Shown piece after piece: positions 3,701-47,506 of a stretch of 64,000 nt of DNA; position 1 is the stretch's first letter; each line of letters begins with the position of its first letter. The stretch lies in the NCBI RefSeq assembly GCF_052425735.1, contig NC_135760.1:26102001-26166000 (forward strand), written 5' to 3'. Made by a program: the position numbers and the translations under genes. The notes under the pieces are model-generated. The model was given only the letters and a program-made list of their open reading frames with translations. It did no database searches and was not told the DNA's origin. This stretch comes from Oculina patagonica (taxonomy: Eukaryota).

Positions 3701-4317
3701 ATAACCTGCTGCCCATGCGTTAATACAGGCGTCCCACCTGTATCGGAGGCATCAGGACTCAGTACTATAATACACCATACCCCCACCACCCCCCCCCCCC
3801 CCCACCCCACACACACACACACACACACCCTATCCTCCTTTCTTACCCTTGTGTCATCAGATATCACTCCACAAGACACCTTCTCTCCTTTGGTCCAGAT
3901 CTCATTCACTTGTGCACGCACCCCTGAATGCGAAATCTTCTTGGTGACATAAACACAAGAACCAACCAATTGTTTAGAAAATCGCCACATCTCACTTCTT
4001 GTGACGAACTGGTCTTTAAACAATAGCTCCACCAAATCAACAGATACATCCTTAGGTTCAACCTTGGTGACTTCTACATCCCAATACGTCCTCAGCTGGA
4101 ATATATTAGCCACCGACTGTTCGATACTGATTGTATCTTTCTGTTGGAAATCAGGGCTGATCGATTTAATCTGCAGCAGAAGGCGAGTGTTGTCTTCATC
4201 TGGGTGATGTATTTCCAAAATGTCTCCTACATTTTCGTTCGGAAATTCCTTTGGGTTTATGATAAGTTCATCCTCGCTGAAGTTTTGCTGATGGACCCAC
4301 AACTTGAAAAGCTTCAT
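703..4317 (-). CDS. DEPDC5: GATOR1 complex subunit DEPDC5 (Iml1 homolog), 5' part only; gene continues beyond the window start
   Basis: Exons complement(3847..4317, 2974..3184, 703..960) with GT-AG sites and consistent phases. The joined protein ([26 protein letters not shown]...VVFRS...[27 protein letters not shown]...[12 protein letters not shown]...[12 protein letters not shown]) matches the DEPDC5/Iml1 N-terminal and SABA region. Confidence 0.93.
1117..1322 (+). mobile_element. tRNA-derived SINE-like repeat
   Basis: A/B-box-like head (ggtggcctaatggttag...gggtttaagccct) followed by a body shared with copies at ~5915-6120, ~9840-9940, ~44470-44670 (-) and ~58803-59090. Confidence 0.6.
1941..2963. 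mobile_element. Non-autonomous DNA transposon (MITE), ~180-bp TIRs, 9-bp TSD (Mutator-like or unclassified)
   Basis: TIRs tagcctgcgttgcagacgaacaaaa... (1941-2125) and its inverse (2785-2963); TSD TGGCACTTA at 1932-1940 and 2964-2972. Confidence 0.9.
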
Positions 4318-4587
4318 CCTTTCACGCGTTTCACTCAGAATGGAAGGAAACTTAGAACAAACTGATAATTTTTGCTTTACAACTATTTTACCTCAAGTTT
4401 TCCGCCATATTGTTTTTCTAAGGACATACCGCTGCTTTCTTTCTTGTCATCGCAGCTTCAGCTAGTTCCAGTTTACCCGAACAACCACAAATTGACGCCT
4501 GACAAATTTTGTATTCGGCGCGTTTCGCAGGGCTTCGCTCTTTTTCTCGTTTTAAAATCTTTAAATTGTTTTCACGATCTGAATGCG
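4318..4587. promoter_or_regulatory. Bidirectional promoter region between DEPDC5 and MRM3
   Basis: Head-to-head start codons 270 bp apart; CpG-containing; YY1-like CCGCCAT at ~4401. Confidence 0.6.
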
Positions 4588-7461
4588 ATGCATGTGTTAA
4601 TTCAAAGGTTTAGTCTGGTGAAACAAGCCCGAATAGTGGCGAGATTTTCTTTTGAGGCACCTCAATCTGGCCAAGCGCAAAAGCCTAGGCACGAGACGAA
4701 AAGACACAATGAAACACATAACACGATTATTGAAAGTGGCACTCCACGTCTCAGGTAATTAGGAAGTTTTCCTACTGAACCATACAGTATTCTCATAAAG
4801 ACTTCATCAAGCACGAACTGTAGGCAACTGGAGCATTTCACGACCTCAACCACCCTTCTCTTTCCGAGAGTATACTTGGAATTTTTTGATGGGGCTCTCT
4901 ATTTTGATCCTATTTTTTTGACCAAAATACCCATCTGTATGCTATTACATTGTACTGCAAGAGTTTGTATGAACTTGAAATTTGATTGAAGATTAGCAGG
5001 TCATAAGCACAGTACTTGATGTTTTGTTTGAACAGATAGTTGAATCAAAGTTTGAGAAGTTTTACCAGGTGACTCGATCCCTTCCTCTTCCATTTCTGTT
5101 CAAGTGTTTTTTTTTTTTGGCTGTTTGTATGAGTTTAATGTCTCAAGCTTTGAGAGAAAATTGGACTCAAATAAATGTATCTTGTTCAAGCACATGTAGT
5201 AATCTACCGGTAAATGCGCTATTATTAAAAGACATTTTTTTTCTTTCAGAATGGCAGCATCCCTAAATAAAAGGAAACACAGAGAAAAACATAACCGTAT
5301 CATCCTTGAGGGATGGCGTCTAATAAAAGAGGCATTAATGGCCAAAGCTAAAGTATTAAGCATATTCTACAGTGATCCAGGACTCTTGAATCACTTTGAC
5401 ACTTTCAATTTGCCAAACAACTGTCTTGCACAAGTAAGCAGAGGAACAATGGAAACTCTATCGAATGCCGTCACACCACCTGGTATCATTGGAATGTTTA
5501 AGCGTCCAAGACAAGGGGAAGGAGGAAAATTAAAAAGCAAAACTGCGCTCCAAAATCCTCTGACAGTGTTATGTGATGGACTGAAAGATCCATCAAACTT
5601 AGGTATGATCATCATGTCCAGGGCCATAGGCGGGGGGGGGGGGGTACAATGGGCGCGTCTGCACCCCCAGGTCACAAAGGTCCACCTAAACTCTCAGAAT
5701 GCAGGGAATGTGGACTTCAACAACTTGATTTTTCAAAATTTGCCAGTGAAGAATACCCCCAAGTCTCCCTAGACACTCAAGCCTCCAGTGCTTGTACCCG
5801 CCCATGCAAAATCCTGACTACAGCCCTGATGTCATCATGTTATACACTGTACATATAAGCAGCACAAGCTTACCTAAGTAAACATGTTTGGTTCCAAAAG
5901 TTTTAATGCTTGTAAGAGGTTTTGTGGTCTAACATGGTCATTGGGCTTCAGTTGACTCCAGATCTAGTGGTCTGTGTTCAAGCCCTGACTAGGATCATTG
6001 TGTCGTGTTCTTGGGTTAGACACTTCACTCTCAAAATATATCTTTCTCTATCCAAGGCTATTTTATAAATGGGTACTGGCAAATTAAATGCTTGGCACTG
6101 GGACAATCCTGTAATTGAATGTTATCCTCAGTGATTTAATCACTGTGAACAGTACAAGAGCCCACATTAAGTAGCTGTGGTTTTTCACACCTATTTCACT
6201 CTGCTGAAAAATACCATAATTATGCAAATTTACTTCTATTTTCAGTGACATTAAAGTTCCCATTATTCTTGTCTTACCAATAACTACTATTAAGTGCCAC
6301 TAGATCACGATGATGATATGCTCTTTCTAGGTACATTATTGCGGATATGTGCAGCAGCAGGATGTCAGTCATTTATAACCTCAACCGGCTGTGTTGACGT
6401 GTGGGAACCAAAAGTGTTACGATGTGCTGCTGGTGGACATTTCTATGTTCCAATTCATTACAACTTGCATTGGGAAGATATCGAGACACTTGTTAAAGAC
6501 AAAAGGATTTTTCTTGCAGACAACAACATCCCTGGTATGAAAATCAATCAACATATTTTATTTTACATGGTACAGTTGAGATTAAGTAACACAATGGTAT
6601 CAGCTAGTGGTTTTTCTGGGAAAAGACAAAATTTTTAGTTGAATAAGAAAAAGTAAGGTCTTATTATAAGCTTAATAATGTGTAAATGAATCTATCATGA
6701 TCAGCAAAACCTGGATGAGAATGAATTGAATGAAACATAACTTTTTGAATTGCATTGTCTTGCATAATACAACCATCAAACATTAAGACTTTTACATGTA
6801 AGTATTTTGATCTTCGAGGGATTTTACACCACCTTTCAATAACATGCGAACTCTGAAGTTTAAAACCTAGCTAATGATTGCTTTTTTTGCTGCTGCCACT
6901 CTTAATTATGACACAGCAATCAACAATCCTCGGAAAAAGGAACAAAAAAAGAAATTTAATCTAATTTAATTAAAAACTTTTTTGTGACCTTTTGAACCTG
7001 TTTAAAAAGTAAACTTCTGTTTCTTGAGGGGTCTGCTAAGATGATAAATTGATGGCAGCAGAAAAAAGGAACAGTTGATTGAGCTGAGATCGAATGTTAT
7101 TAAAAGGTGCAGTAAAAGATCATCTGAAGCAGGGCCGATCAATTAGATTTGCATGTGTTAATAAATTTTCTTATTTTTCTGTGTGTTGTAATTTTATCCA
7201 TCAGGCGAGTTAAACATTCCATCCCTAAAATATTTCCAAGTGGACTGGACTCAAGGACCCAGTGTTCTGGTTATTGGTGGTGAAACGACAGGACTTGGAG
7301 AACCTGTGAAGAGCTTGGCATGTCAGTACGGTGGACAACTTGTTCATGTGCCCATGGCAAGCACAATTGACAGTATAAGTGCAGCAATGGCTGGCACAGT
7401 AATTATTTATGAGGCAAACAGACAATGGATTTTGGCACATCAAGCCAGAGACAACAGATGA
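4588..7461 (+). CDS. MRM3: Mitochondrial rRNA methyltransferase 3 (SpoU/TrmH SPOUT family), ~326 aa
   Basis: join(4588..4754,5250..5602,6331..6534,7205..7461); 981 nt in frame. SPOUT motifs: IILEGWRLIKEAL, DGLKDPSNLGTLLR, VDVWEPKVLR, LVIGGETTGL, VPMASTIDSISAAMAG. The start codon is less certain. Confidence 0.85.
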
Positions 7462-7550: not shown

Positions 7551-10500
7551 TTAGTTTATCTCCGCAATTACAGCTAATGCAGCTCCTGTTGATGCATCTG
7601 CATTTTCACTCAGTACCAGCGGCAATCCAAAAACCTGTTCAACTTGTTTTTGGAGAACCTGATTTCTTATCAGAGCACTTCCAGTGCCTACAATCCTTTG
7701 CACGCCATGGAAATGCAGAAATTCCCGTGACATCATCTCTTGTACATTTTCCATAAGTCCTCGACATAGAGCCACACCAACATCGCCAAGTGAGATATTG
7801 TCTGATGTAATGTTACTCACTTGCCCTCTTTGATCTGGAATGTGCCTTTCTCCCCACAAAGTGGGAACTACTTTAAGTGATGTTGAACCCTTTTTATCTG
7901 CACAGTCTAGTATTCTTTGATAAATTTCATCTGTAGATGGAAGGCTGTCGTTTATGCCAAGATCCTTTATCCATGATGTCAACATCTTGACATAGGTAGC
8001 AAACACATTACCACCTGTTAAGACAAATAAACAGTTATTTTTAACAATAATTACCATTGCCTTGTTGAAGGTTGCATAATGATAAATTGTCAACTTTAAA
8101 AACAACTTTCAATACTTGTGTTCTCTGCTGATCAAAGGACCAGTAACTGCACAAAGATAAAGCTATGCTTATTTCTTCACCTATCAGACAGTTGTGCTGT
8201 TTAATGGCAGCAAATACATAGAGCCTTCAAAAAATAATTATAAAGTTTATATCAACTGGCAACAGTATTGTGTGGTTCCAGAAAATGTCAGTACTCCCCC
8301 ACAGACGGGATTGGAAATTCCTGGGGGTGGGTGGGGGAGGTCTCAGAGACCAAAAACTTTAAAGGAAATGTATGAAACTAACTTGGAATTTCCAGAAGGG
8401 TGGGGGGGGGGGGGTCCTTAGGAATATCTGTTCTGTGGAGGAGGTATGGAGAATTTTTGGAACTACCCAAACATGGTTGCACTTGGAAACAGTCATTACT
8501 TACATGTAGAATAGTACAGTAATTCTTGGCCTCACATCAGCCATAAATACAGTGGAGGTTTAATGACTGTCCTTTAGTATCTGGCTATAATACCTGAAAG
8601 TGATGCAGCTGTAATGACTTTTCTTCCTCCAAAGAATGGAAGAATTTGCACCGCTTCACTTGTTATGTTTGTAGCTTGGCTAGGCGAATCTCCCAAACTG
8701 GCATTATCAGAAATGACAACAGCTAGCTGACAGGAAGTACCAATATTAAGAACTGTAAAGACAATGCCAGAAAACTTATAATTATATGAAGCCTGGAAAA
8801 GGTCTTTGTTGTATGTTTTTGTTCACTATGTTGGTGGTTGACAGTGCACAAAACCTGACAAAATACAATAGGTGGTTATGTGTGTTCTTGCAACTAACCA
8901 ATGGAAACATCGTGATTACATAATTTATGTATTGTGTATGAGCGCAAAACAAAAGATGTGCATGGTCATAGACCTTCCGACATAAATCTTGGCATCTTTG
9001 ACTTGTTTGCTTATTGATGTTTGTCAGGTTTCATAACCATTTCCCTTGATTAACTACATTGTATGATCAAAGGTTATTACATGTATGTTGTTTGTCACGG
9101 TATCCACACATGTTGTATCAGCCGTGGAGGACTGGACCAAGTCTTGTTCACACGAAGTTAAACATGGCGACCATGTTTCCTTTAGTTAGTTCAAGGTAGA
9201 ATAAACCTTGAATGTGTACCATTTCATTGTTAACATTAATGTAAAAAAAAAACAGTATTTATCACCTGCATCACTCTGCTGTGATATACTGGCAAGCACT
9301 GAGCACTGGAAGTCCCCCAGTCCCACCCCCACAGGTGTTCCAGCAGGAATATTGCAGAAAGTCTTTTGTAGTTTACCAGCCATGGTATCTGACTCTACCG
9401 CCACTGGCAGGAGATGGGTGGGGAATTTTGCACCTTTCAGGCTATAAATGGCAGAAAATAAGAAAAAATTATAAAAAAAGTTTAAACAAAAATGGGTCCC
9501 TGATAATAATATCAAATATCACAAACTATAAGAATTTTAACCAAACTATCCTGGTGGTTGGTTTTTGATGTTCTAAGAGTGCTGTGTTGGGAATTCACCT
9601 TGCTTTCATGCCAGGATCCCATGAAAGCTTGGCATTGATGGAATCAACAGGTATATATATATTGTACAGTATGCTGTATGCTGGGTTTAGAAAAAGTCAT
9701 ACATGTAGGGTTAGCTTCACCCTTGATTTGTACAGTTTGTAACTGTTCAGTTTTGGATGTGGTAGGAAAAATCAAAGAACATTTTCACAAATAACATTGT
9801 AAAGACTAGCCTAAATTTCAGACATCTTTCTCTGGTCACCCGTTGCATCTACGGCAGAGTAGAAATGCTCCTAGTAGCTTAATGCTCCAGAAACCGGGAT
9901 AAGCTCCAGCAGTGTGGGCCACTTGGCTTGATGCAGACTTTACATAACCTATCCTGTGGTTGTGCACTCCTGGAGGATGATATCTGAAATTCAGGCTAGT
10001 AAAGACCTCCTTGCCACTTTTATAACCTTATAATGTGCTTGTATTTCTTTTTTGTGGCAAAATGAATAAAACAAATTAATTTATTTACTAAATGACTATT
10101 ATTTTTTAATACTTTATTTTTAAATGATTATTATATTTATATTGTTTGAAGAAGCCCGATGTTGGCAGGTGCAAAAACTCCGCAATAAAGGGAGTTGGCT
10201 AATTAACTCACATCTCTAACTCCCACATCATGTTATGAACATCAAAATATCCCCAGCTTACAGCATTGTGTAGAGACATCCAAGGCTTGTCCATTTGACA
10301 CAAAACACACACGATAAAATCCATGATCGTTCCAGCACAGTCGAAACGTTCCAAAAGGCTAGGGTGGTTTCTTTGAAGCCAGAAAAGACTAGCACATCCA
10401 AAACCAGTAGAAATAGCAACATTTGTGCGCGTAGCTGGAAGTGTTGCCAAAAATTCATTAGTACATCTTCTATCCTCCCAAGTAATTAAACGAGAAACAT

Positions 10501-10843
10501 TGTCGCTGGATCTAAAATATTCGTTAGATTCTGATATGTTCCATGTCACGCAAGACTTTCCCTTCCACATCACACAACCATGCATTTGTCCGCATATTCC
10601 AACACTGCTCACTTTGGCCATGTAATGCGACGAGAGCCGGCCAAGCGCATGCTGCAAACAACCAATAATTTTTGCTGCATCTTGCTCCGCGAAGTTCACT
10701 CCCTCAGTGCAAATATTTGCCCCTGTTTCACATCTAAAACTTTCAACAACATCTCTTGTGGTATTTTGCAAGAGGGATACTTTGATCGAGGTTGTTCCTA
10801 CGTCGATTCCGAGGACAAACGATTCGGAGTCACAATCCGCCAT
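7551..10843 (-). CDS. SHPK: Sedoheptulokinase (FGGY carbohydrate kinase family), ~476 aa
   Basis: complement(join(7551..8014,8594..8752,9266..9441,10212..10843)); 1431 nt in frame. Motifs: LGIDVGTTSIK, GICGQMHG, LITWEDRRC, GDFQCSV, VLNIGTSCQL, AASLSGGN, PTLWGERH, VGTGSAL. Confidence 0.93.
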
Positions 10844-10992
10844 CTTCTTTTGTAACGCAACGCTCTTGGAAATATTGCGTGACGTGGGACTCTTGGTGCA
10901 TTTTACATGACATGACTATTTGCTTGAGTCAGCTCTCAGATTACTTTTTTTCAGAGAGCTTTTTTTTCGTTTCGCCTCTTTCTTTGTTGAAG
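10844..10992. promoter_or_regulatory. Bidirectional promoter region between SHPK and FMO paralog 1
   Basis: Head-to-head ATGs only 149 bp apart; contains a TGACGT (CRE-like) motif at ~10880-10885. Confidence 0.6.
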
Positions 10993-13900
10993 ATGAGAGT
11001 TGCAGTAATCGGAGCTGGAGCTAGTGGCCTTACTTGCATAAAATGCTGCAAAGACGAAGGATTGGAACCGGTGTGTTTCGAGCAAGAAGACTCCATCGGT
11101 GGCTTGTGGTATTTCACCGAGGAAGAACGGCATAGCTCTGTTTACAGATCAACTGTGATAAACACCAGCAAGGAAATGATGTGCTTTTCGGATTTTCCAA
11201 TCCCTAAAGAATACCCGCCGTACATGCGCCACGACTGGATCATGAAGTATCTTCATCTGTACGCGGAATCGTTTGATATGTACAAATGCATTCGATTTCG
11301 TACGAAGGTCGTTGACCTCAGGAAAGCGGCTGATTTCGAAGAGAGCGGAAAATGGGTAATCCTCTTTCAAGATCAAAACAGCGAGGATCCTGAAGAAGTG
11401 AAGAAAGAAGTTTACGATGCTGTCATGCTGTGTGTCGGTCACCATTCAGAGCCTTCATGGCCAAGCTTTCCTGGAATGGACGAGTTTTCAGGGCTGAAGA
11501 TCCACAGTCACGCCTACAAGGACTTCAAACCTTATGAAAACAAAAACGTTCTACTCGTGGGTACGTATCGTGTTCTTTTTGCTTTTGCATGTAGTCATGT
11601 ACCCTTTACAAATGGATCGAATTTACTGCCAATATTTTAAGCCATCAATCCCGGGGGGGGGGGGGGGTGGGGCACTTCCTATAAATGGGCTAATGGGGAT
11701 GTGCCGCTGGATGGGGTCGCATTTTCACGACTGGACTGACTAGAATGGGGGTCGCCATTTCAAGCATTTTTTATAGGGTGACTAGAATGGGGTCACACTT
11801 TTCCGGGATTTTGAGAGTACGAACATTCTGGCAAGTTGTGATTTATGAACGGAAATTTTCCCTGAAAAAAATGTTACCGTATTTATTGCTGTTGTTCAAT
11901 ATTTGACAAACAGCTCCCAGAAAGTGACTAAGTTGGGGTCGTAAAAATTAAATTTACTCAAAAGTGACTAAGATGGGGTCTATAATTGGCCATAGAATAT
12001 GACTATAATGGGTAGGGGTTCTGAGAGGCCAGCCGCACATACTCAACAAAAATTTACCCAAGTACCCCCCCCCCCCCGGCCATCAATGCATTAGGTCTCG
12101 TTTAGCGCTGCACATAAGAAATAAAAAAGTCATACTGTGTTGGTGGTCTAGAAATCAGCAGAGATGGTATCTTTCCGGGGTAAAGAGTGGTGCTCATATT
12201 GATCTCCTTTAGGGGTTTAATAGTCCAATTTCGATATTTTAAAATTCAGCCTAAAACAATAGACATCACTATGAGGCTCCGGGGAATAAACCCCACAAAC
12301 TCTATAGTTTGGTCCCCGGAGCCTCGTCTTGAGGTCTATATATATGTTTTAGGCTGAATTTTAATATATCAAAATTGGGCTATTCAAATTTTCTGATGAG
12401 CATCCCCCTCCCTTTCATATGGGAGATTCCCCCACCTCCGGAATATCCCCCCAAACCCCTAACCATTTTACCACTTGCCTTCCGTGTCGCTTATTCCATT
12501 TTTTACACTGCTCCCAACAAACCAAATGCCTGGAACTTGCTACAGATTGAGGTTTAAGTACACATGCCATGCCCAGCTTGTTCCCTGAACCTCTGCTTCC
12601 AGTTTTCAGCAACAGGGAGGGGCGAGGGTCCTGGGGATACAATTGTTTTGAAAATAGAAAAGTTGTACGAGTTCATAGACTGATATGAATGTCTCTACTG
12701 ATTGGCTGGCCTGCTGTCTCAGCTCTATGCCATGATCATGAACAGGCCCTGTTTTGGGAATAAGGCGAAAAGAAAAGACTGATAACAATGAAATGAAGAC
12801 TGAATGAAAAGGAGGGTTGACTGCAGAGAGAGGAAAAGAGGGCTTGTGAGCGAATGCTTACAGCCAACTGATACCAAAATCTGAAATCACTTTTTTTTAC
12901 AATGGTCAGATGTGGATTTACATGTACTGTATAGTTGACAAGGTTACACGAGCTAACTTTAGGATAGTCAAATTTGATGAGCTTGTATATACCAGTAGGT
13001 GTCCTGAGTCCTTTTTCCAAGCTTTTCCCTCTAAGTTCTCTATCCTCCACAAACTTGCCTCATCCCTGGTCCTTTGCAAGCTTTTCTTGGACTAGTGCTC
13101 CCTCCTCCTCCAGCCTGAGATGGCTTCTGTCCTAAGTTCACTTCCTGGGTAGTTGTTAAACAAATTCTCCACACCCTAAATTTCTGTCGGAATGAGCAAA
13201 TAAATCACAGTAGCTACATATGTCAATCTTAGGCAGAAAAAAAGAATTGAAAACAATAATTGAACTAGTTTCATAGGTCTGCAATGCGTGCAGATCTATT
13301 ATTATTATTATTATTATTATTTATGTTTTTATTGTTATTTATATATTATAGGTCTGCAGTGCATGCTGATCTAGATAGATCTAGGTATTTTCTATGATAT
13401 ACTCCATTACAGACCACAGAAATGATGCCAACTTTACCAATGAAAAAAATGTTGTTGATTTGTTAACAGAACAGTTTTTTTATTTGTTTGTCTTCTGTAG
13501 GTATTGGAAACTCTGCAGGTGACATTGCTGTGGAACTAAGCCGCCACGCATCCCGGGTTTACCTCAGCACTCGCCGAGGAGCATGGGTCCTATCCCGACT
13601 GGGGAAAGGTGGGGAGCCTGCTGACCAGCAGTTCCTCAGACGATCCGCATCTTTGATGCCATTATCACTTCTTAAGTACCTTTTCATGAAAGCAGTAAAC
13701 CAGAGATTTGACCATGAAACCTTTGGGTTACGTCCCCAACATTCAATCATTGGTCAGCATCCAATGGTTAATGATGACCTCCCTCACCGCATTATTGTTG
13801 GAAGTGTTGTTGTTAAGCCTAACGTGGCCAGTTTTACCAAAACTGGGGTTGTCTTTGACGACGGTACCCAAGTAAATGACTTGGATGCAGTGATCTTTTG

Positions 13901-15792
13901 CACAGGGTACAAGATAGGTTTCAACTTTGTAGATGAGTCTATTCTTCCTGTAAGTGATAACAAGGTGGAATTATACAAATACATGTTTCCACCAAACCTT
14001 GCCAAGCCAACTCTTGCTGTGTTTGGTTGTTTTCAACCTCTCGGTGCGATTTTTCCATTGTCAGAGCTGCAGGCGCGCTGGGCAACACGAGTGTTTAGTG
14101 GGAAATCATCGCTTCCTGCAAACATCGTCATGATGGAAGATATTGAGAAGAAAAGAAAAGCAATGCAAGAAAGGTATTATGCCTCAAAACGACACACCAT
14201 ACAGGTTAGACAAGGAGTTTAGTACATAATCAATAATAATAATCCCGGCCTGACCAATCGATGGCCTGACCGATCGATGATCAGAAATCAATCAATCAAT
14301 TGATATTAATCGATGATGGTTAGTTAATTGATATCAATTGGCATCGGCCAATCGATGACCAATCGATAGTCACAAATAAAATTTCCATAATTACATCGAT
14401 TGTCATCGATTGCTATCGATTTTCATCAATAGCTATCGATTTTCATCGATTATCATCCATTGTTATCGATACCTTACGGCGTACTTGGGCATCCCCAGGA
14501 TAATTCTACAGGATATCCGGAAATAGATTATATATATTGCAATCCTAAAACGACTGATTGTGAGCTGAGCGCACGATGTCTGAAGAAGCGGATAAAGTCG
14601 GGGATAAAGCAACGGACGTTACACTTGTTATTAAGTGCATAGTCAAAGGCTACCATCTTCTCAAGTACCCTATACGCTAGTGTAAACCTTGCCCCTTTTC
14701 TTAATAACGTTGTTTTTGCTGGATAACAGACATAACAGTAACGGTATATCACGAAAATGAATAAATGAGGTATTGATCGCTTTGAAGAGCCACTGAGTTG
14801 AAGTAATAACACGCATAATATTAAATCAAAACAAATAAAAAACAATCGATGAAAATCGATGGTAATCGATGATAATCAATGGTAATTGATGATAATCGAT
14901 GAAAATCGATGAAAATCAATGACAGTCGATGAAAATCGATGAAATTTAAAGTCACAAAATTTTCCGTCATCGATTGGTCACCAATTTCCAATATCAATCA
15001 ATTAATTGGCATCGATTATTATCGATTGGTATCGATTATCATCGATTATCGGTTTCATCGATTGGTCAGGCCGGGTAATAATAAATCCTGCATGTGATTC
15101 CATGAGTACACCTATCAGAGGTCTGAGCTCAGGCAACTACCAAGCTCTCTCTTCATGCTCCAACTCTCATTATCCTTCCCTTTTGAACGCTGGCCATGCA
15201 GTCTACTTTATTTAAACTTTTTTTTAAGAAAACATTGAATTTTGCATTTGTATACTTCATAATGGATAATTACATTGTTACCGTGTCAGCTACTTTGGCA
15301 ACGTTCTTGTGCAGTTGATCACTTAAAATTTTTCAGCTCTCAACAAATCGCTTGCTCAAACATCTGAGAGGACCCGAGGTAATGGAATGCAGGTCATCTC
15401 AAGCAATTCTGTATGTCCTATCATGTTTCACTGGCTATTTATTTTTTCCCTCCCTACAGGTTGACTATATTCCCTACGGTGATGAATTAGCAAATGAGAT
15501 TGGTTGTAAGCCCAACTTTGCCAAGCTCCTTTTCAGCGACCCTGCCTTAGCCCTGAGGTGTTTTTTCGGGCCTTGCACACCAGCACAATTCCGAATCATG
15601 GGACCTGGTGCTTGGGCGGGAGCCAAGAAGGCCATTGAAGATGCTCCTGAAAATGTGATTTACGCCACAAAGACACGCGTTTTGCAGCAGAAGGAGGATA
15701 AGGGGAACAACAGCGCTGCTGTTTACTTGAAGTTACTGGTTCTGTTAGTTGTTGTAGTTGCTATTCTAATGAGATATTTTCGTGAAACCTGA
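10993..15792 (+). CDS. Flavin-containing monooxygenase (FMO5-like), paralog 1, ~534 aa with C-terminal membrane anchor
   Basis: join(10993..11560,13501..14204,15460..15792); 1605 nt in frame. FAD motif VAVIGAGASG, FMO signature FSGLKIHSHAYK, NADPH motif VGIGNSAG, CTGY, ELQARW, hydrophobic C-terminus. Confidence 0.93.
14244..15075. mobile_element. Non-autonomous DNA transposon with CCCGG termini and ATCGAT-rich subterminal repeats, in FMO paralog 1 intron 2
   Basis: TIR cccggcctgaccaatcgatg / catcgattggtcaggccggg, inserted in a (TAA)n tract with taataat on both sides. Confidence 0.8.
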
Positions 15793-20472: not shown

Positions 20473-20620
20473 TTAAAACACACAACAATATCAGTTTGTT
20501 TCATTTCAAAACTAAATCAACGTCTTAAGGCTACAATTGTCTTTAGGTTAACAACGTTCAGCCATAGCCCACAAAACAGAGATTCTCATAAAATAGGGTG
20601 TTTTACCTCAGTTTATGTTC

Positions 20621-23255
20621 TCAGAAGTCGTCTTCAGTGAAACCTTCGTCTGCTTCTTTGATGGCACGACTTACGGTGTCATTTATTTCTTTTATTCTTG
20701 CTGGATCTTCAGGAGGAAGCACTTTTAGTAGCTCTGTTTCGATCTGCTTGATTCTCTTCTCCACTTTGTGGTGGAAGTGTTCTTTGGCTTCCATCACAAG
20801 CTTCCTTATAGCTTCTTGAGCCTCTTGGCTGCCTTCCATGAGCTCTGTCTTCTTCATCTCAATGGTGTGTCTTTCCTTCTCCGGATCCAAGGCGACCAAC
20901 TGGCCAAGACTCGCCAGGCGGCTCATCAGGTGGTTGCGGGATATTTCCACGTACGTGTTGGATATGGACCACACCACATACGACGTCGTATTTGCTTGGC
21001 TCACTTGCTCATAGATGAGATCGCGCATGAAATCACCATCAGCATAGCCGTTAGCCAGCACTCGCCTTTGGCCCACCTTGGCATAGTCGACAAAACTTTT
21101 TAGGCTTTCATTTTGACAAACCTTGATGATGTTGGTGATAAACTGGAAGAACTCCACCAGTTTCTGCCACTGCTCACGAACTGAGGCCAGGGCTTTGATG
21201 CCTTTCATCAGGGTGTCTCTTATTTGGTCGAAGTTAGCAATCTTCTCTGGGCTCAATTCGGCAAGGCTTTCTAACACCTTACTTAACTCTTCATTGTTCT
21301 CCTTTAGTTGCTTGCAAGTCTGATCGTAGCGGTCCTCTTGCCTTTCTAATAGGCCCCTTGTTTCAGCGATTTTGAACCGTGCACCTTCAACTGCTGTCTT
21401 AGCTGCACTTTTAGAGGTAGAACTTTGAGATCTGGCCATGTTTGCTTGCCTTGGAGATTTGGTAGTGAAAGGATTTCCTCCTGTCTTTGCACGAATTTTT
21501 GTGCACAACTTCATGACGTCATTCTTTAGTTCAGCTGCTTGTGTAGCAATTCCTTTGAGGTTCTCAGGTGAAAAGGTCAGCCCCTTCGTTATTGCTTCCC
21601 CTTCCTTGCTTATCTCCAAACCTTTTTTCAGAAGCTCTTGGACCTCTTTGTCTATTGGACCCCCTTTTTGGCCAGTCAAATCTTCCTGTAAGATTTCCAT
21701 ATATACCTTCATCGACTGAAGCTTTTTGTCCAACGGTTCTTCAGCACTGCTGGAGCCACTGTCGCCTTTAGCTTTTACAGAAGCAGAGTTAAGGTCTTCT
21801 GACAACTGAGTAGTGAGAAGCTTCAATTGCTCTCCAGCTTCTTTAAATTTTGGCACTGGGCCGGGAATTGGAGACTGCTCAATACCAGCTTCCTCCCCCG
21901 AATCTGCTGCTGCTGCCGCCGCAGAACCGGCGATAGATGCAAAAGGGTTTTTTGCAACTTTTGCGATGTCAACGACGCCATGTACGATTGTTTCAACAAC
22001 TTCCATGCCCAGGACATCCCATCCACTTGGCATAGAATCTACAGCCTTCTCCCAGCTTCTTTTCGCTTCTCGTACTTCCTTTTCTAGTTTTTCTTGCTGT
22101 TCTTTCGCCAAAGCCATCTTCTCGCGGGCTGCCTTTTCTTTAGCTAGGGCAATTTCTCGTCTCAGTTTTACTTCCTCTTGAGTTTTTTCATAATGTCCCC
22201 TGGCAGCTGAAGAAGCTTCCAATAGCTCGCCCGTCAGATCCATCACGTGCTCGAACTTTGCTTCAACTGATTGTGCCAAGCGCAAACATTCCGCAGAATT
22301 CCTCTCAATCTTTCCAAGTTCTATTGGAAGGAAGTCTTTGACATCCTCATCACTTCCCCTGACCAGAGTACGGACAACTTTCTTCACTTGATCTGGTACT
22401 TGAGCAGAATACAGTCGAATTGCATCCATGTTCTTGGAAAGAAAAAAATAATCGAATTTAGGTTTCAAGTCAGTGGAAATCCCCTGCTGAATGCCTTTGT
22501 CTTTTTATCAGTTTTCCTCGATTGGCATGTGCATAGAAGGATACCAAAAAGTCACCGAAGTATACCATTTTAGCATCGAAGCCTAAGTTACTATATTATT
22601 AATCGTGTTTAACGTATATTCTTAGCCGCGAAGGCCACCTTATGCATGTATTCGGGTAAATGGTCGTTTTAAATTTTATTGCACCCTAAAACTTATCAAA
22701 TATATGCGCAAGCCAGCGGAATACAAAAACAGTAAACGACCAATCGACCAACTGACCGAGCAAGCGAAATACACCGTTTTACTCGCGTTCATTGCCGCTC
22801 ATTAATGCGTTGTTTAAAGACTTAAAACTGTCATTAGAATAGGGCTCCAAATAATAGAAATTGTGAAAACACCAAAAACGTTTTAAATCACCCCAGGAAT
22901 GTTCTATCTTGCATTTTTTGTAAGCCTTTAGCGTTCTTACCTTGTGGGCTTCATTGAAAGCTCTCCATCCAGTATTGCTTACTTGCACCAAACATGCTCG
23001 AAATGATTCGGGATGTTTTATAAATTGGAAACCTTTCTCGGGCCTCTGCTGTTCCAGTGTGAAGTCCTTTTCCCCAGCAATCAGCAACAGGTGTCCCAGA
23101 AGGGCGATAGTCATGGGTGCAGGAGTCAGAAACTCTGCCCAGTTCACCTCGGGTGACATCATCAGCAAGGCCATCTCATTCTTGTCATTTCCTGAGTTGG
23201 AGCTTATCATCGCTTTGTTAAGATCTGCTACCATAGTGTCACTTGGTTCAGACAT
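20621..23255 (-). CDS. Uncharacterised ~708-aa alpha-helical coiled-coil protein with a central hydrophobic/amphipathic segment; putative large subunit of an alpha-pore-forming-like pair
   Basis: complement(join(20621..22432,22941..23255)); phase-0 GT-AG intron joins AFNEAHK|NMDAIRL. A splice acceptor at 23265-23266 just upstream of the ATG implies a 5'UTR intron. Long heptad-rich helices and the segment GWDVLGMEVVETIVHGVVDIAKVAKNPFASIAGSAAAAAA. The function call is inference. Confidence 0.85.
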
Positions 23256-23700
23256 GATTTTTCTCTGAAAATAAACAACCAACAAACAATAGTTTTATCG
23301 TTTATTTCCGCCCCGTGCTCCATAATGGATGTTCATAACGCATAATTTTAGGTGGGTTTTCGCCTTGCCATCCACATAACAACAGTCGAAAATATTACGC
23401 ACGCTTTCAGTGTTACGTGCATAGCGGATTTCTATCGACATCCATCTTTCGATGTGCTAAACAAACAAGACGGATCGAAATCCGCCAATCACAGCCCGCT
23501 AGAATGACCTTCTGAAATTGTCGGCTCTTTTGCATTAAACCAACATCGGTATGCAGCTGTTTTGATTGGCGCATTTCAAAAGAAAGACGATGTCGAAAGA
23601 TGGATGTAAAAAGATAGCTATGCACATAACACTGGAGCCGCGTCTGGAGGCGGGTGTAAAAAGGCGGCCCATAGTAGAGACAAGAAAACGGAGCCTTATC

Positions 23701-24140: not shown

Positions 24141-25792
24141 GCAGTATCGTATCAGTGTGGACGGCATGTCGAATGCACTGACGTCATTCGCGTATTTGTC
24201 GCATGCTCAGATGACCTTTAAAGCGTTTTTAACGCTGCATTCTCAAGCGAAAAGCAATAAGTGTGGACTGAAAGAACACTGAAAGAACGCTGCGAAAACG
24301 GTAGAGTGGACGGATGGGATTTCGGTAAAAACGGAGCGTTTCGAAAATGCGTAAGTGTATACTCGGGCCGGCCTTATTAACGCTCGCGTGTTTCGTATCG
24401 TTAGCTCGGGCCACCTGTGATTATTCAAATTACTACAACCGTATGCGTACTGTCCCGTAAGGCTTGCAGTCGATAACCTTCATTTGTAATACGCACCGCA
24501 AAAAAAGTTTATGCCTTAAGAATCCCTGAATATATCAATATCTGCATGTTGCTTTACCACACTAGTTTTCAGTGCGGCGAGCGGTTTATTTACGCAGGGC
24601 GGGAGAAGCCTTCTCCCTCCCTGATGTAGGCTTGCATATCAATCCACACATTGTTTAGGTCTCGTCGCATACTTTTCAACGCTATTTCCGGAAACTTTCC
24701 ACAAATGGCGATTCCTGTCTACAGACATCCTTTTCAAAACAACAGCGCTCTCCTAAGAAATTTGAATATTAGTGACTTGACCTTCCCAGAGTGTCACACT
24801 TACACGAATGCCGAAAATAAACTTCACGCAGCTATCCTATAAATACAAAACAAAAATCAATCCCTAATGGTTTTTTAATGCTTATAAACTTATTCGTTGA
24901 AACGATTCACCTCTCGCCTGGATGCGGCGACATATTTGTTAAAAAATATTTATTACACATTTCGATTTTATCTCTTCCAGGAAACATTGAGAAAAATATT
25001 GACATTTAAGTTTGATTTTCGTGAAATCATTCCATATTTTTATAGAAAAAGCAACTGGAGATTTTAATTGTAAGATAAGGAAAACGGCTGGAACAATTAT
25101 ATTCTGTAAAATTCTGTAATTCGAAATTCTGTAAAACGAAACATAATATTTGTAAAAATAGCGTTACAAATAAATATTTATTATCTTCTACCGAAAATAT
25201 TGCGTCGCGCTGTAGCGCGCTACAGAAGCGAAAATTCGCAGCCGGATGTAACCTGACCTGCGTTTGGATATTATCACTGAAGGTGGCACTGATCAAAGTC
25301 TATCGTCCTTTTCTCAGAACTCAATGCAAATTTTTTTCGTTAAAACAACAACGTTGCATGGGTCATTCATAAAGAAGCCCTCTTTGGGAAAAAAATTACA
25401 CAACCGACCTAAATGGAACGTCCTAGCGCCACCAGGCCAGTAAAGGCTTAGTGAAGTAGACAACAAGGAGAGTTTAGAAGGGCTTTCATTTATTCCAAGA
25501 ACAAGTGTTTCTTTGAGCGGCCAGGGCAAGGGCGAAAAGACTCTTAAAGGCAAAACGCCAAAACAATCTTCCCAGCCATCGAAAATGAAAATGCACCAGC
25601 CATCGCCACCATTTTCTCAAAATTCAATACATGGTCCAGTTTTCTCCTTAAATACTGCGCTGTCTAGAGTAACCCATTTAAATCAATAATTTTTAGAAGT
25701 GGCTTTTACCATACAACTTTCTTCTGACATTCAAAGGCGTTGAATCAACATCATTCGTTCATGTATATCGGATAAAACTGATATCTGACACT

Positions 25793-26256
25793 TACCTACC
25801 TCGTGTTAAAGCAAAACTTGTCGAATGTTCCTGTGTACCACACAACGCACGGAAGAAACTGGAATTGTCAGGCAACGGTAGAGGAAAAATTCACACAACC
25901 GATCTCAGTGGAGCGTCGATACACCACCCAGTTATATAGCTTAGCAAACAGGAAGTTTAGAGGGTATTTCCCTTATTCCTTGAATATTGCTCCTTTCATT
26001 TTCACCACGTGCACACTTGAAAGTATAATTGTTCCAGGAATAAGGGAACCCCCCTCTAAACTTCCCGTTTACTGCCGTTCTGGGCTGTTTTTACGGGAAA
26101 GTGTATGGTCATTCCATTGTGGTTGCTTTTGCTAATCAATTTGCGAGGACACTGTTTCATATTTGGACGTGATAACCCACTGCCTTCTGGCAATTTCATT
26201 TCTCCCGTGGCCACTGAAACCACTGAGACATCTTTCGCTTTAACACGAGGTAGGTA
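25793..26256. promoter_or_regulatory. Palindromic bidirectional promoter with inverted, homologous non-coding first exons
   Basis: Inverted-repeat core 25946-26070 (aaacaggaagtttagagggtatttcccttattccttgaa ... ttccaggaataagggaacccccctctaaacttcccgttt). The exact 20-mer GCTTTAACACGAG|GTAGGTA occurs on - (25793-25812) and + (26237-26256). Promoter function is inferred. Confidence 0.55.
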
Positions 26257-43278: not shown

Positions 43279-46200
43279 ATGAAGGTCGCCATTATAGGAG
43301 CTGGCGTTAGCGGTCTAGTTTCTATCAAATGCTGTTTAGACGAAGGACTCGAGCCAGTCTGCTTTGAGAAATGCGCTGATATCGGCGGGTTATGGAAGTT
43401 TTCCCAAGCAAATGGCTCCTACTCGGGCAGTGGGTCGGTCTACGAATCCACCGTTATCAACACCAGCAAGGAAATGACATGCTTCTCGGATTTTCCCGCG
43501 CCAAAGGATTTCCCGCCATTTATGCCGCACGGCGACGTCGTGGAATATCTGCACATGTATGCTAAGCGTTTTGACCTGCTCAAATACATTCATTTCAACG
43601 CTGTGGTTGTGGAAATAAGCCGAACCCCAAACCACAGGGAAACTGGACAGTGGAAACTAAGCTTCGTTAACTGGGAAGGGAGGAGAGTTGAAAGCATTTT
43701 TGATGCTGTTATGATTTGCAACGGGCACCTATCAAAGCCATTCTTTCCAGCATTTAACGGGCTTGATAGATTCGAGGGACGCAAACTGCATAGCCATGAA
43801 TACAAGAGTTATCGTGGATTTGAGGGCAAAGTGGTTCTCGTCATAGGTACGTTTTTATAAGGATAACGTTACCTAGTATATTTTAACTTAAAAGTTGTAT
43901 TCATGTAAATTAGTCAATTTGGAACAGTTTTCAAATGTTATTACTGGTAAATAAGCGTTTTCTAGAGTTAGCATTTGTGGAACTTTGCAATGGGTTCCAA
44001 CAATCTTGGTGACAAGTTTTGACCAATCAGAGAAGAGAGGCAAGTTAATTTGCCCGCGTGCTTGTCGCTGATTGGAACTAGACTTCTGATTGGTTTAATG
44101 CATCAAAACTATTGGCTTTGTAATGGCTTCCAACATTCGTCTTATATGTTACGACAGCCAATGGATGGAACGACTCCTCTATTGATTATATAACATCAAA
44201 ATAGGTGTAAAGTTTTGGAAAACCTGAGAGCTAATATCGCCAAGCACAAATCCAATACTTACTCTAATTAGCTTTGTCGTTCTTAAACAAGGTAATTATG
44301 CTTTTAAGTAAAAAAATCACTTTATATTTAAACGATATCTTGGGCGCAGTTTATTTTTAACATAACGAGATTCAGTAGCCCAGAAGGGTACATTTTGCAA
44401 TCGGTCTTTCTGGAGTTAGTACGAAACTCAGCAACCGTGTATTATTATGTAGTCTTCCACGTCTCGCTTAAAAGTCAAATGAACATACCAGGCACTTAGA
44501 TTAGGTTTCCGTTGTATTTAGTCACTGGGATATTGCTACTCCCCCTGGATGGGATGCTAGTTTATTGCATATTTGCCATTGCTGGTTTACCAACAATTTG
44601 CCAGAATCCGTTTGTACCTCTGGGTAGAGAGGCACTGTAGGAGTAAAATATTTTGCCCCAAAACACGACGACTTTGAATTGAAACTGTTCAAACGCACTA
44701 GAATTGTAAATCTTCAAGGCCAACCATTTTCTTATTACCTATAAACCGTTAATTGTATAACTAAATCAATTGCTCACTTAATTCACTACAAGGAATACTG
44801 CAAATGAACTGATTCAGTATTGGCAATACTGCCTCCAAAACGCTATTATTTTGATAATGAACGGGTTTAGGAGCCTTTTTGAAAAATACCGATTTTAGCA
44901 TACGTCAGTAAAGTTCATTACTACATCCTGGATACGACACATTAGCACACTTTGTGGACAATTAACTGAATTATAAAGCTAAGATTGATCACATTTTTAG
45001 AATAGTCGACTAAATACTGGCCTTTCTACAACTCCACCGCCCGTTAATTTAGCTTTTTTTTCTGATCTCGTAAGTAGTGTGGTCTGTGTGGTAAACATTT
45101 GTGCGACGGATATCCGCCGAAAATGACCAACTTGTCTTTGCAAAATCTACGGAAAACAAATTGGGCGAAATTATTTGGTTCAGGTGCTAGTACAGTTTAT
45201 GGGCGAGTTAAGTAGGAAACCGTTAAGTTTCTAAATAACATAATATCGACCAATATAAAGGTTAAAAAAATTACGTGTTTTTTAAAGAATCAAAGCTAAT
45301 TGATCGCAATTTTTTTATTGGACTATGAAGAAAGTAGACTCTTGCTTGTGAAGCAATTTTGATAGAAAGGTAGAACTAAATTCACGGGTTTTACATGAAA
45401 AAAGAGCGCAATCTGCACTCCAAGTTCAAGGTGAAATATTAGTGGTGTGTATTACTCATAAGTGGCATTACATTAAAATCCCTTTCCGAAATTTCCGGCT
45501 TATATAAACATCGTTCTATTTTTAAATTAGCCTCTGTCGGCCCGACAGTAGCAGATCAAGTTAAAATTCCTTTAATTTTATCCACGTTTCAAACCATTGC
45601 TTTCAGTTGCTTTTGAGCAGTGAGAAAGGAGACTTTGCACGGGCGCTAATCAAAGCTTTGACTACGGCCAACCCTTGTCACTAATCTTTATCAGCAGCAA
45701 AGTACGATTCGTATTTGCGTACGTACAAATGCATCCCGTGCGATACCCCCTTAATATGGATTGGCCTCGTCTATTTACAAGCTTACGGTGTCTAATTAAG
45801 CAAAAGCAGGCTTCTTTGTTTCTACATTTTCTCCTGCACAATAGAGCAGTGAACAGTGAAAACATTTTTTTATATTTATATCCCTGATTCAATTATTCGT
45901 TAATCTGGAAAACAATTTCCAAAAAAATGTTCCTCGTAGTAATGATATTGACGCTTTTAACAGTAAACCGATAACTATATAAATTATCTTCAATGCAGGC
46001 CTTGGAAACTCTGCAGCCGATATTGCCGTTGAGCTCAGCCGCCACGCCTCCCAGGTTTACCTTAGCACCCACAGAGGGGCCTGGGTGATTTCCCGCCTGG
46101 AAAAACGCGGATTGCCATGGGACCAGCACGTGGAAACGAGATTCTTTCAAAACCTGCCGAGCAAGATCAAAGAGTGGATGGCTGTACGAAGCGCCCAGAA

Positions 46201-47506
46201 GAGGTTCGACCATGAGACCTACGGGCTTCTTCCCCAGCACGGAATCCTGAATGCCCCCACGGTGATTAGTGATGATCTCCCCCTTCGTATCGCCACCGGA
46301 ACGATTAAACTACAACCCCGAGTTTCTCACTTTACAAGGAATGGCGTGGTTTTCACCGACGGCACAAGAGTGGAAAACCTGGACGCCGTTATAGCATGCA
46401 CGGGCTATGATATCAATTTTGAGTTCCTAAAGGACAAGTACATCTTGCCAGTTGAAGACAACCAAGTATCGCTGTACAAACAAGTGTTCCCACCCCACCA
46501 CCCCAAGTCAACCCTTGCCATCATGGGTCTGATCCAGTCTTCTGGCGCGTTCTTTCCCGCGGCTGAGTTGCAGGCTCGCTGGGTGACTCGTGTGTTCAAG
46601 GGGCTGGCCAGGTTACCCAGAAGAGAATTTATGTTGCACGACATAGGATTGGAGAAAAGAATGCTCAGGCAAATTTTCTACGCTTCAAGGAGACTCACTA
46701 TCCAGGCAAGAAATCCGTTTTGATTTGATAAGACAATTGATTAGTACCATCAAAGGTCAATACGTCGATTGACTTTCCCCCTAAATTCTGCCAAATTTGT
46801 GAATAGGGCAAAAATATTTTCATTATATAGCCAGAAATACACTCTTATTTTAAGGGAAATCGATGTCAAAAATTTCAGGAAAATTTGGTTTCTGAGGTAT
46901 TCAATCCAACCTGTAAAATTTAGAGTCACCGCGCCGTGTTTGCTGCACTTTAACACGGTGGTTTTTAAAGTGAAAACACAAAATAACACAAAATAGTTCT
47001 CAGTGAATTATTCCTGTCACAAAAGGACCATTGGACCATTACTAAACCAAGGCAAAATGTTATGTCTCAATGTTGATTATCTGTTTCAAAAATAACATTT
47101 TTTAACGGACCGTTCCTCTATCTTTATTCTTCAGGTGTCCAGCATTCCGTACAAAGACCAACTCGCAGATTTGATTGGATGTAAACCAGATCTCAGAAGG
47201 CTCTTTTTCAGGGACCCTTTCCTGGCCTTCAAGTGTTTTTTCGGACCTTGCTGTGCAGCCCAGTACCGCCTCATGGGGCCTGGGGCATGGCCAGGAGCCA
47301 AAGGTGTCATAGAGGAAACGTACAGAAACGAGATGTTTCCAAACGTGGAGAAGAGAAATAAAACCACGACAAGCAAACACCAGACCATTGTGAAGCTGCT
47401 GAAGTTGGTCTTCATGTTTGTAACCGTGGCAACAATCAATGAACTGTCCCAGGATCTGCGAGGAGAATGGGACGCAGTGGTGGGTTGGCTGCGGGCGGGG
47501 CGATGA
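43279..47506 (+). CDS. Flavin-containing monooxygenase (FMO5-like), paralog 2, ~548 aa
   Basis: join(43279..43846,45999..46705,47135..47506); 1647 nt in frame. Motifs VAIIGAGVSG, FEGRKLHSHEYK, IGLGNSA, CTGY, ELQARW. Same intron positions as paralog 1; the second intron has a GC donor. Confidence 0.92.

Follow-up and report, generated by a model that had tools for sequence, protein, structure and literature searches.

The window, a 64-kb stretch of Oculina patagonica DNA, contains two protein-coding genes that lie head to head on opposite strands. The large gene, on the minus strand, begins with an ATG at position 23255 and specifies an all-helical product of approximately 708 amino acids. The small gene, on the plus strand, corresponds to RefSeq LOC144647269, encodes a protein of 354 amino acids and is present as two consecutive units, A and B, with the start codon of copy B at 35400 and the equivalent position of copy A at 29645 (Table 1). 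The earlier note on this DNA had described the two genes as dissimilar and, in agreement with this, comparison of their products by BLASTP (E = 5.7) and hhalign (probability 0.1%) revealed no homology. Exons were searched singly, full-length comparisons were made with the database proteins P0056 and P0001, and copy A, which is decayed, was searched as separate pieces with its frames left unmended.

The large/small cluster sits between tandem copies of a flavin-monooxygenase (FMO)-like gene, as FMO-like paralogues are found on both sides of it (10792-14219 and 43279-46720). Other head-to-head arrangements occur in the window: within 3676-5769 an N-terminal exon of IML1/DEPDC5 on the minus strand faces an MRM3-like exon on the plus strand, and within 10211-11637 an FGGY-kinase exon on the minus strand faces the first FMO exon on the plus strand, with open reading frames that overlap by ~50 nt. 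Directly after copy A is a GC-rich, low-complexity segment with open frames on both strands (31490-31790) that has no counterpart at the corresponding offset after copy B. Near the end of the window, the strong AT skew and stacked long open reading frames at 60473-61675 and 62711-63845 are attributable to two arrays of a 37-bp satellite, each of ~31-33 copies with 89-91% matches. A run of N at 57459-57613 was left untouched.

Table 1. Features of the large/small gene locus, in coordinates of the window (a slash separates exon from intron).
Feature	Position	Strand	Remarks
Large-gene final exon	20473..22436	-	Codes for residues 105-708 (coding ends at 20624); also holds the stop codon and some of the 3'UTR
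Large-gene exon 2	22941..23264	-	Acceptor AG at 23266-23265; ATG at 23255; residues 1-105
Large-gene intron 1 start	25689..25799	-	Still homologous to the other arm; conserved block at ~25710-25760
Large-gene leader exon 1	25800..25945	-	Ends GCTTTAACACGAG/gtaggt; 5' boundary approximate, transcript L002 reaching 25937
Palindromic core of divergent promoter	25943..26073		CACGTG-centred; mirrored motif sites
Small-gene leader exon 1	26070..26249	+	Ends GCTTTAACACGAG/gtaggt; 5' boundary inferred; shares homology with the minus arm and with L012 exon 1
Small-gene intron 1 start	26250..26365	+	Mirror of 25689-25799; conserved block at 26300-26339
Copy A exon 2	29636..29853	+	GTG at 29645 in place of the start codon; original donor lost, exon running to a donor at 29853
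Copy A main exon	30359..31410	+	Split over three frames (breaks near 30650 and 30830); decayed
Unit B promoter	32650..33013	+	2.8 tandem copies of a 129-bp core; CACGTG at 32937
Unit B leader exon 1	33000..33163	+	Ends GTTTTAGCAAGAG/gtaggt
Copy B exon 2	35391..35447	+	ATG at 35400; codes for MTSAAVDEQKMSHESH; donor catg/gttagt
Copy B main exon	36370..37392	+	Residues 15-354 of P0001, RefSeq LOC144647269

Between the two genes lies an imperfect palindrome of ~675 bp (~25689-26365), the centre of which is a CACGTG E-box at 26006-26011. A repeat search identified the inverted pair that forms its core (25943-25998 and 26018-26073; 56 nt, 80% complementary) as well as three more colinear inverted pairs that stretch the palindrome to its full extent. 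Repeat search, alignment and BLAST of arm against arm (E = 1e-18 and 5e-17) together confirmed the mirror-symmetric core and mutually similar arms that had been reported from inspection of the sequence. Each arm consists of half of the core, a leader of ~150-180 nt and an identical 20-mer, GCTTTAACACGAG/GTAGGTA, that spans the splice donor. This 20-mer (GCTTTAACACGAGGTAGGTA), whose identity at both donors had also been claimed, is indeed exact at 25793-25812 on the minus strand and at 26237-26256 on the plus strand; 0 of 100 shuffles contained a match, and copies with three mismatches are found at 33151 (+) and 26801 (+). Mean column identity over the full arm alignment is 73%, and the two arms in the window are ~69-73% identical, with many indels. 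The earlier note had the arms ending at the donors. Their similarity up to the donors held, but the proposed end did not, since homology runs for ~110 nt into both introns, and the homologous mirror stretch of ~330 bp per arm takes in all of the non-coding first exon and its donor as well as the beginning of the intron. The conserved blocks within these intron starts lie 50-90 nt past the donors and equal the donor in conservation among all arm copies; each may be an intronic enhancer or a piece of an alternative longer exon.

The core carries a number of mirrored motif sites. GAS-like TTCNNNGAA sites are located at 25976 and 26032, and AGGAATAAGGG modules at 25971 (-) and 26036 (+); in addition, there is a kappaB-like GGGRNNYYCC site at 26044 and an ETS-like CAGGAAGT at 25950. 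At the level of consensus motifs, we take the sites in the core to be putative bHLH, STAT, NF-kappaB and ETS sites. The CACGTG hexamer occurs five times in the 64-kb window, and two of the five occurrences fall inside cores, one at the centre of the palindrome and one in the promoter of unit B (32937). The central E-box, the AGGAATAAGGG modules and the TTCNNNGAA sites are retained in both arms in both species compared, whereas the TATA-like sequences of the two arms are unlike one another. As expected of any palindrome, the core is predicted to form a strong hairpin (-59 kcal/mol, z = -10). A search of Rfam over 22.5-37.5 kb yielded no fitting family, the palindrome core being covered by a sub-threshold chance match of the miRNA-precursor kind, and RNAalifold applied to 11 copies of the leader returned no consensus structure.

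Transcripts of related corals indicate how the two arms are used. For the large gene, the JGI transcript L002 comes from a close relative and is 95.5% identical to the window's gene over coding nucleotides. Nucleotides 1-126 of this transcript align with 25937-25803 of the minus arm (85% identity), carry the indels of that arm and are followed by the exon that starts at 23264, just ahead of the start codon, behind the acceptor ttttcag/AGAAAAATCATG. The resulting junction, GCTTTAACAC(T)AAG/AGAGAAATCATG, is equivalent to the predicted junction 25800>23264, so that the minus donor is joined in a relative's transcript to the acceptor before the large gene's ATG exactly as had been proposed. The 5' end of L002 (equivalent to 25937) sits upstream of a TATATAA-like box. 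A second large-gene transcript from a relative, L001, uses the same acceptor with a different 5' end, its nucleotides 1-160 being antisense to the start of the small gene's main exon (30489-30330), including ~30 nt of intron. The window lacks a GT at the site equivalent to the L001 junction in copy A as well as in copy B, and the 5' end of L001 is either a far-upstream alternative exon that only the relative has or a chimera of assembly. Two further large-gene mRNAs, L013 and L014, have 5'UTRs of 35 and 11 nt, which are too short to be of use.

The acceptors of the small gene, cttgtag/AATTAACAAG at 29636 in copy A and cttgtag/AATTAATAAATG at 35391 in copy B, are likewise each positioned just before the start-codon position, and all three acceptors are good splice sites. 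The small-gene mRNA L012, from a more distant coral (protein P0016, 62% protein identity), begins with ~125 extra nucleotides, after which its leader aligns with the arms over ~175 nt and ends in TTTAACACGAG (GGATTTAACACGAG). This leader is joined to AATCAACAAG...ATG, a segment that aligns base for base with exon 2 of the window from the acceptor onwards (29636/35391). An arm-type leader is therefore joined to the homologue of exon 2 in a mature mRNA, which bears out the link between the plus donor and the small gene. Our scan of JGI metagenomes for small-gene transcripts returned only genomic or unspliced contigs (L006 and L008-L011; L007 repeats L003).

Unit B possesses a promoter and leader of its own: BLAST matched 32886-33547 to 25956-26650 of the plus arm with 70% identity, and the equivalent donor that unit B was said to retain is present, with the exon ending at 33163; the unit B promoter is without a minus-pointing partner. 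In unit A, by contrast with its orthologue in a related coral (L006), which has an uninterrupted reading frame, the coding sequence is decayed, and it is therefore probable that the plus promoter of the palindrome at present supplies copy B through splicing over a long distance. RefSeq isoform X1 (P0176) joins exon 2 of copy A to the main exon of copy B. As this isoform uses the copy-A exon 2, its transcription, or annotated gene start, must lie upstream of 29636; such a start fits a promoter near 26 kb, but implies only that the promoter is upstream.

Both kinds of junction that had been predicted from the sequence are thus real in coral mRNAs, as observed in the relatives represented by L002 and L012. 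Both transcripts are intron-free across the junction, and the corresponding genomic sites pair GAG/GTAGGT with ttttcag/AG for the large gene and with cttgtag/AA for the small gene. The splice coordinates given in the earlier note proved right to the base for the exon ends (25800 on the minus strand, 26249 and 33163 on the plus strand) and for the acceptors (23264, 29636 and 35391), and its claim that the two genes share homologous first exons is upheld by the alignment of the arms and by the arm-type leaders on transcripts of relatives. A distance of 450 bp separates the two donors and, if both leaders begin beside the core, the transcription starts are ~130 bp apart. We considered whether the leaders could be supplied by trans-splicing and rejected this unlikely explanation, as their length is 150-180 nt, they are encoded in cis and each is specific to its arm, the minus-arm indels recurring in L002.

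The arrangement is not confined to the window. In L004, from a coral with ~85% coding identity, a large-pointing arm (3254-3539) and an opposite arm (3053-2511) both contain the donor; this contig has an extra copy of the large-pointing arm (5535-5781), and its core is amplified in tandem with CACGTG in every unit. Contigs L005 and L006 have arms with the donor upstream of the large gene, as in L004, and L004 and L006 also retain the donor of the small-gene leader. Identity is 74-79% between orthologous arms, which share indels, against 61-70% between the arms of one genome, indicating that the inverted duplication predates these species and was kept. Some indels are arm-specific, among them an insert of 30-45 nt that the small-type arm alone carries. 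When 11 copies were compared, the most strongly conserved parts were the core module AGGAATAAGGG, a block within the leader (26100-26139), the final 20 nt of the leader together with the donor (0.87) and the intronic block; the donor-proximal leader and the intronic block are kept in all 6-11 copies.

In other corals, homologues of the large and small genes occur together on 12 contigs or more, as judged from contigs of equal length. In a paralogous pair from the species that provided L004, the large gene (in L015) and the small gene (P0026, in L017) are on the same contig in divergent orientation. This pair has an inverted repeat of its own, with arms at 2987-5186 and 2820-1099 of L015 that are 1.6-2 kb each, 71-83% identical over aligned BLAST segments and near-identical over long stretches around donor-like sites. 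The donor-like sites, TTGTGAAAG/GTTTGT, are mirrored at 4378 (+) and 1607 (-), with CCAAT/ATTGG boxes before each, and we infer that they end exons; the exon-1 tail of the paralogue-type mRNA L013, CCTGTGAAG/AAAAGAGAAAAATG, is only loosely like them. We found no similarity between the mirror repeat of L015 and the arms of the window. Arms that are alike within a locus and unrecognisable between loci point to inverted duplication on repeated occasions or to concerted evolution of the arms. On the small-gene side of the L015/L017 pair, the long interval harbours a LINE with reverse transcriptase and endonuclease. In a more distant coral, L016 contains a 346-bp self-palindrome at 8013-8358 with mirrored CRE-like TGACGTCA sites and CCAAT boxes; the acceptor that precedes the ATG exon of the large gene follows ~80 nt downstream. 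This self-palindrome is unrelated to the palindrome of the window and may represent a MITE or a further mirrored promoter.

Searches of Pfam, NCBIfam and PDB sequences with both proteins returned nothing significant, only coiled-coil noise, the Pfam/NCBIfam matches to NheB (E = 0.2) and NheC (E = 0.32) falling far below the cut-off. The model that AF2 gave for the small protein (pLDDT 80) predicts two helices of ~110 residues arranged as a hairpin with a small head bundle, and a Gly-rich, hydrophobic, low-confidence turn at residues 162-184. The best compact PDB matches of this model in Foldseek were the pore forms of AhlB and SmhB together with XaxA and YaxA. These matches had E-values of 2e-3 or higher (~3e-3 for AhlB/SmhB) and TM scores of ~0.35, they were scattered among generic coiled coils, and no Foldseek match of the small protein reached E<=1e-3. 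C19orf12-like glycine-zipper matches, also weak, were obtained for 9 of 29 small-protein homologues. The model thus weakly suggests a resemblance to components of alpha-pore-forming toxins, a lead rather than an assignment to that group. For the large protein, AF2 gave an unreliable model (pLDDT 48), which was not used for fold searches. The large-protein family comprises 1154 clusters (50% identity) at E<=1e-3 with a patchy spread over sharks, a lizard, a teleost, Lingula, corals and basidiomycetes (P0177-P0324), and all named members are 'uncharacterized' or 'hypothetical'.

That the locus holds a mirror promoter with homologous spliced leader exons, and that this structure is real, old and used, follows from the observations above. 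As for how it arose and what it does, we favour, with a probability of about 0.78, a mirror-symmetric divergent promoter that originated in an old inverted duplication and whose leaders are spliced to two unrelated genes. The duplication would have copied a cassette comprising one half of the promoter and a non-coding leader exon with its donor and the adjoining ~110 nt of intron, placing two copies back to back around the CACGTG E-box and so giving rise to a divergent promoter with mirror symmetry. Splicing across a 2.5-kb intron would join the minus leader to the ATG exon of the 708-aa all-helical protein, and the plus leader would be spliced onto exon 2 of the 354-aa protein, a predicted coiled-coil hairpin whose hydrophobic tip is rich in Gly. 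The small-gene unit would later have been duplicated in tandem to generate units A and B; copy A has decayed since, and its exons would now serve mostly as extra 5' exons for copy B. Two transcription starts would flank the 130-bp core, the mirrored, shared factor sites would drive both genes jointly, and the common leader would give both mRNAs the same 5' end, with the products perhaps made together as partners. As the arms are only ~69% identical, their regulation may have diverged. Also weighing against this reading are the decay of copy A, which is the nearest target of the plus donor, the origin of both supporting transcripts in other corals, the deviating 5' end of L001 and the absence of a consensus RNA structure from the leaders. 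Co-regulation and partnership of the two proteins are plausible, and what speaks for the 'two-component system' of the earlier note is conserved linkage and shared 5' architecture.

The features of the palindrome allow other readings. Palindromic junctions are a recognised type of artefact, so that a fold-back chimera of long-read assembly might be suspected; however, arms of only 69-73% identity with many indels, the same layout in the independent assemblies L004, L005 and L006, and transcripts that match individual arms specifically effectively refute this already. A MITE or foldback transposon, or the remnant of one, that came to lie between the genes is also an unlikely source of the palindrome, whose donors would then be used by accident and whose link to the genes would be fortuitous. 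The inverted repeats, the small size and the lack of a meaningful open reading frame are features of such elements, though not specific to them, and the strong hairpin of the core, the tandem amplification of the core in unit B and in L004, fragments of the core in the small-gene introns (28649-28695 and 34636-34720 by BLAST), the miRNA-precursor-like match below threshold and the unrelated palindrome beside the ATG exon in L016 all fit this origin. Yet the palindrome occupies the orthologous position in at least three other coral assemblies, where orthologous arms group together, and it supplies the 5' end of mature mRNAs from both genes. Within the ~90 kb of coral sequence that we searched, no copy was present outside the locus, whether in the remaining ~48 kb of the window or in L015 and L017 (43 kb), and the palindrome is flanked by no recognisable target-site duplication. 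The prospect raised in the earlier note, that the whole palindrome with its donors is a high-copy MITE, therefore found no support over this range of sequence, and the present role of the palindrome would be the same even if its origin lay in a transposon.

Somewhat easier to entertain, though still improbable, is the explanation that two independent one-directional promoters stand back to back and that their similarity is a relic of duplication, with neither shared control nor selected symmetry. The divergence of the arms to ~69% identity, arm-specific indels such as the insert of the small-type arm, the dissimilar TATA-like sequences and the ability of unit B to work without a mirror partner would all be accommodated. 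On the other hand, the AGGAATAAGGG and TTCNNNGAA sites and the central E-box persist in both arms of both species, the donor-proximal leader and intronic block have been conserved across the 6-11 copies, and the second, sequence-unrelated mirror at the paralogous pair argues that symmetry is maintained or recurrent. More speculatively, and on balance doubtfully, corals could keep a mirror promoter-leader cassette at several paralogous loci of the gene pair, its arms homogenised within a locus by gene conversion or by repeated inverted duplication while different loci drift apart until no likeness is left. The cassette would then be a eukaryotic stand-in for an operon: two unrelated proteins that form a binary membrane-inserting (alpha-pore-former-like) system would share their transcriptional input and their 5' leader and so be produced in matched amounts.

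Sites for ETS/GABP and NF-Y as well as E-boxes are enriched in bidirectional promoters. As in ordinary animal bidirectional promoters, two protein-coding genes on opposite strands here leave one short region, an ETS-like site and an E-box are present in the core, CCAAT/ATTGG boxes are found at the paralogous locus, and coordinated expression would be expected. Ordinary bidirectional promoters, however, are not long palindromes and have unrelated first exons, whereas in the window ~330 bp per arm are mirrored. Inverted duplication has produced head-to-head pairs of paralogues, such as divergent histone pairs, COL4A1/COL4A2 and the inverted hsp70 pair of Drosophila. Such pairs resemble the window in having a symmetric shared control region created by inverted duplication, but there the coding genes themselves are duplicated, whereas in the window duplication is limited to the promoter, leader and intron start, and the coding sequences are non-homologous. 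BRCA1/NBR2 and NBR1/pseudo-BRCA1 are duplicated bidirectional promoter units, in which segmental duplication of a promoter and first exons likewise gives unrelated neighbours homologous 5' exons; in that case, however, the whole bidirectional unit was copied elsewhere, and the diverging first exons within a unit are not mirror copies.

Clusters of variable first exons, of the UGT1A and protocadherin type, are similar in that units A and B each have their own promoter and leader and that isoform X1 crosses units; they differ in that the window has only two units, one of which is a decaying gene copy and not a dedicated alternative exon. The likeness to bacterial operons that encode bipartite and tripartite alpha-pore-forming toxins of the ClyA superfamily (XaxAB, YaxAB, AhlABC, SmhABC and Nhe) is functional only, with a larger and a smaller all-helical protein adjacent to each other and presumably made together, and is qualified by the coral small protein's lack of a match at E<=1e-3 (TM ~0.35) and by the unreliable model of the large protein. 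We found no description in the literature of a mirror-homologous promoter, first exon, donor and intron start that feeds two unrelated genes.

Bidirectional promoters are common, and what stands out here is that the two sides are mirror copies that feed unrelated genes. The locus illustrates a simple route by which animals can couple genes: a promoter-leader cassette is duplicated in inverted orientation and spliced onto a neighbour. The conservation of this arrangement across corals, together with a second, sequence-unrelated mirror at a paralogous pair, indicates that the symmetry itself may be under selection. In addition, these findings flag a conserved and uncharacterised pair of genes whose products may act jointly at membranes.
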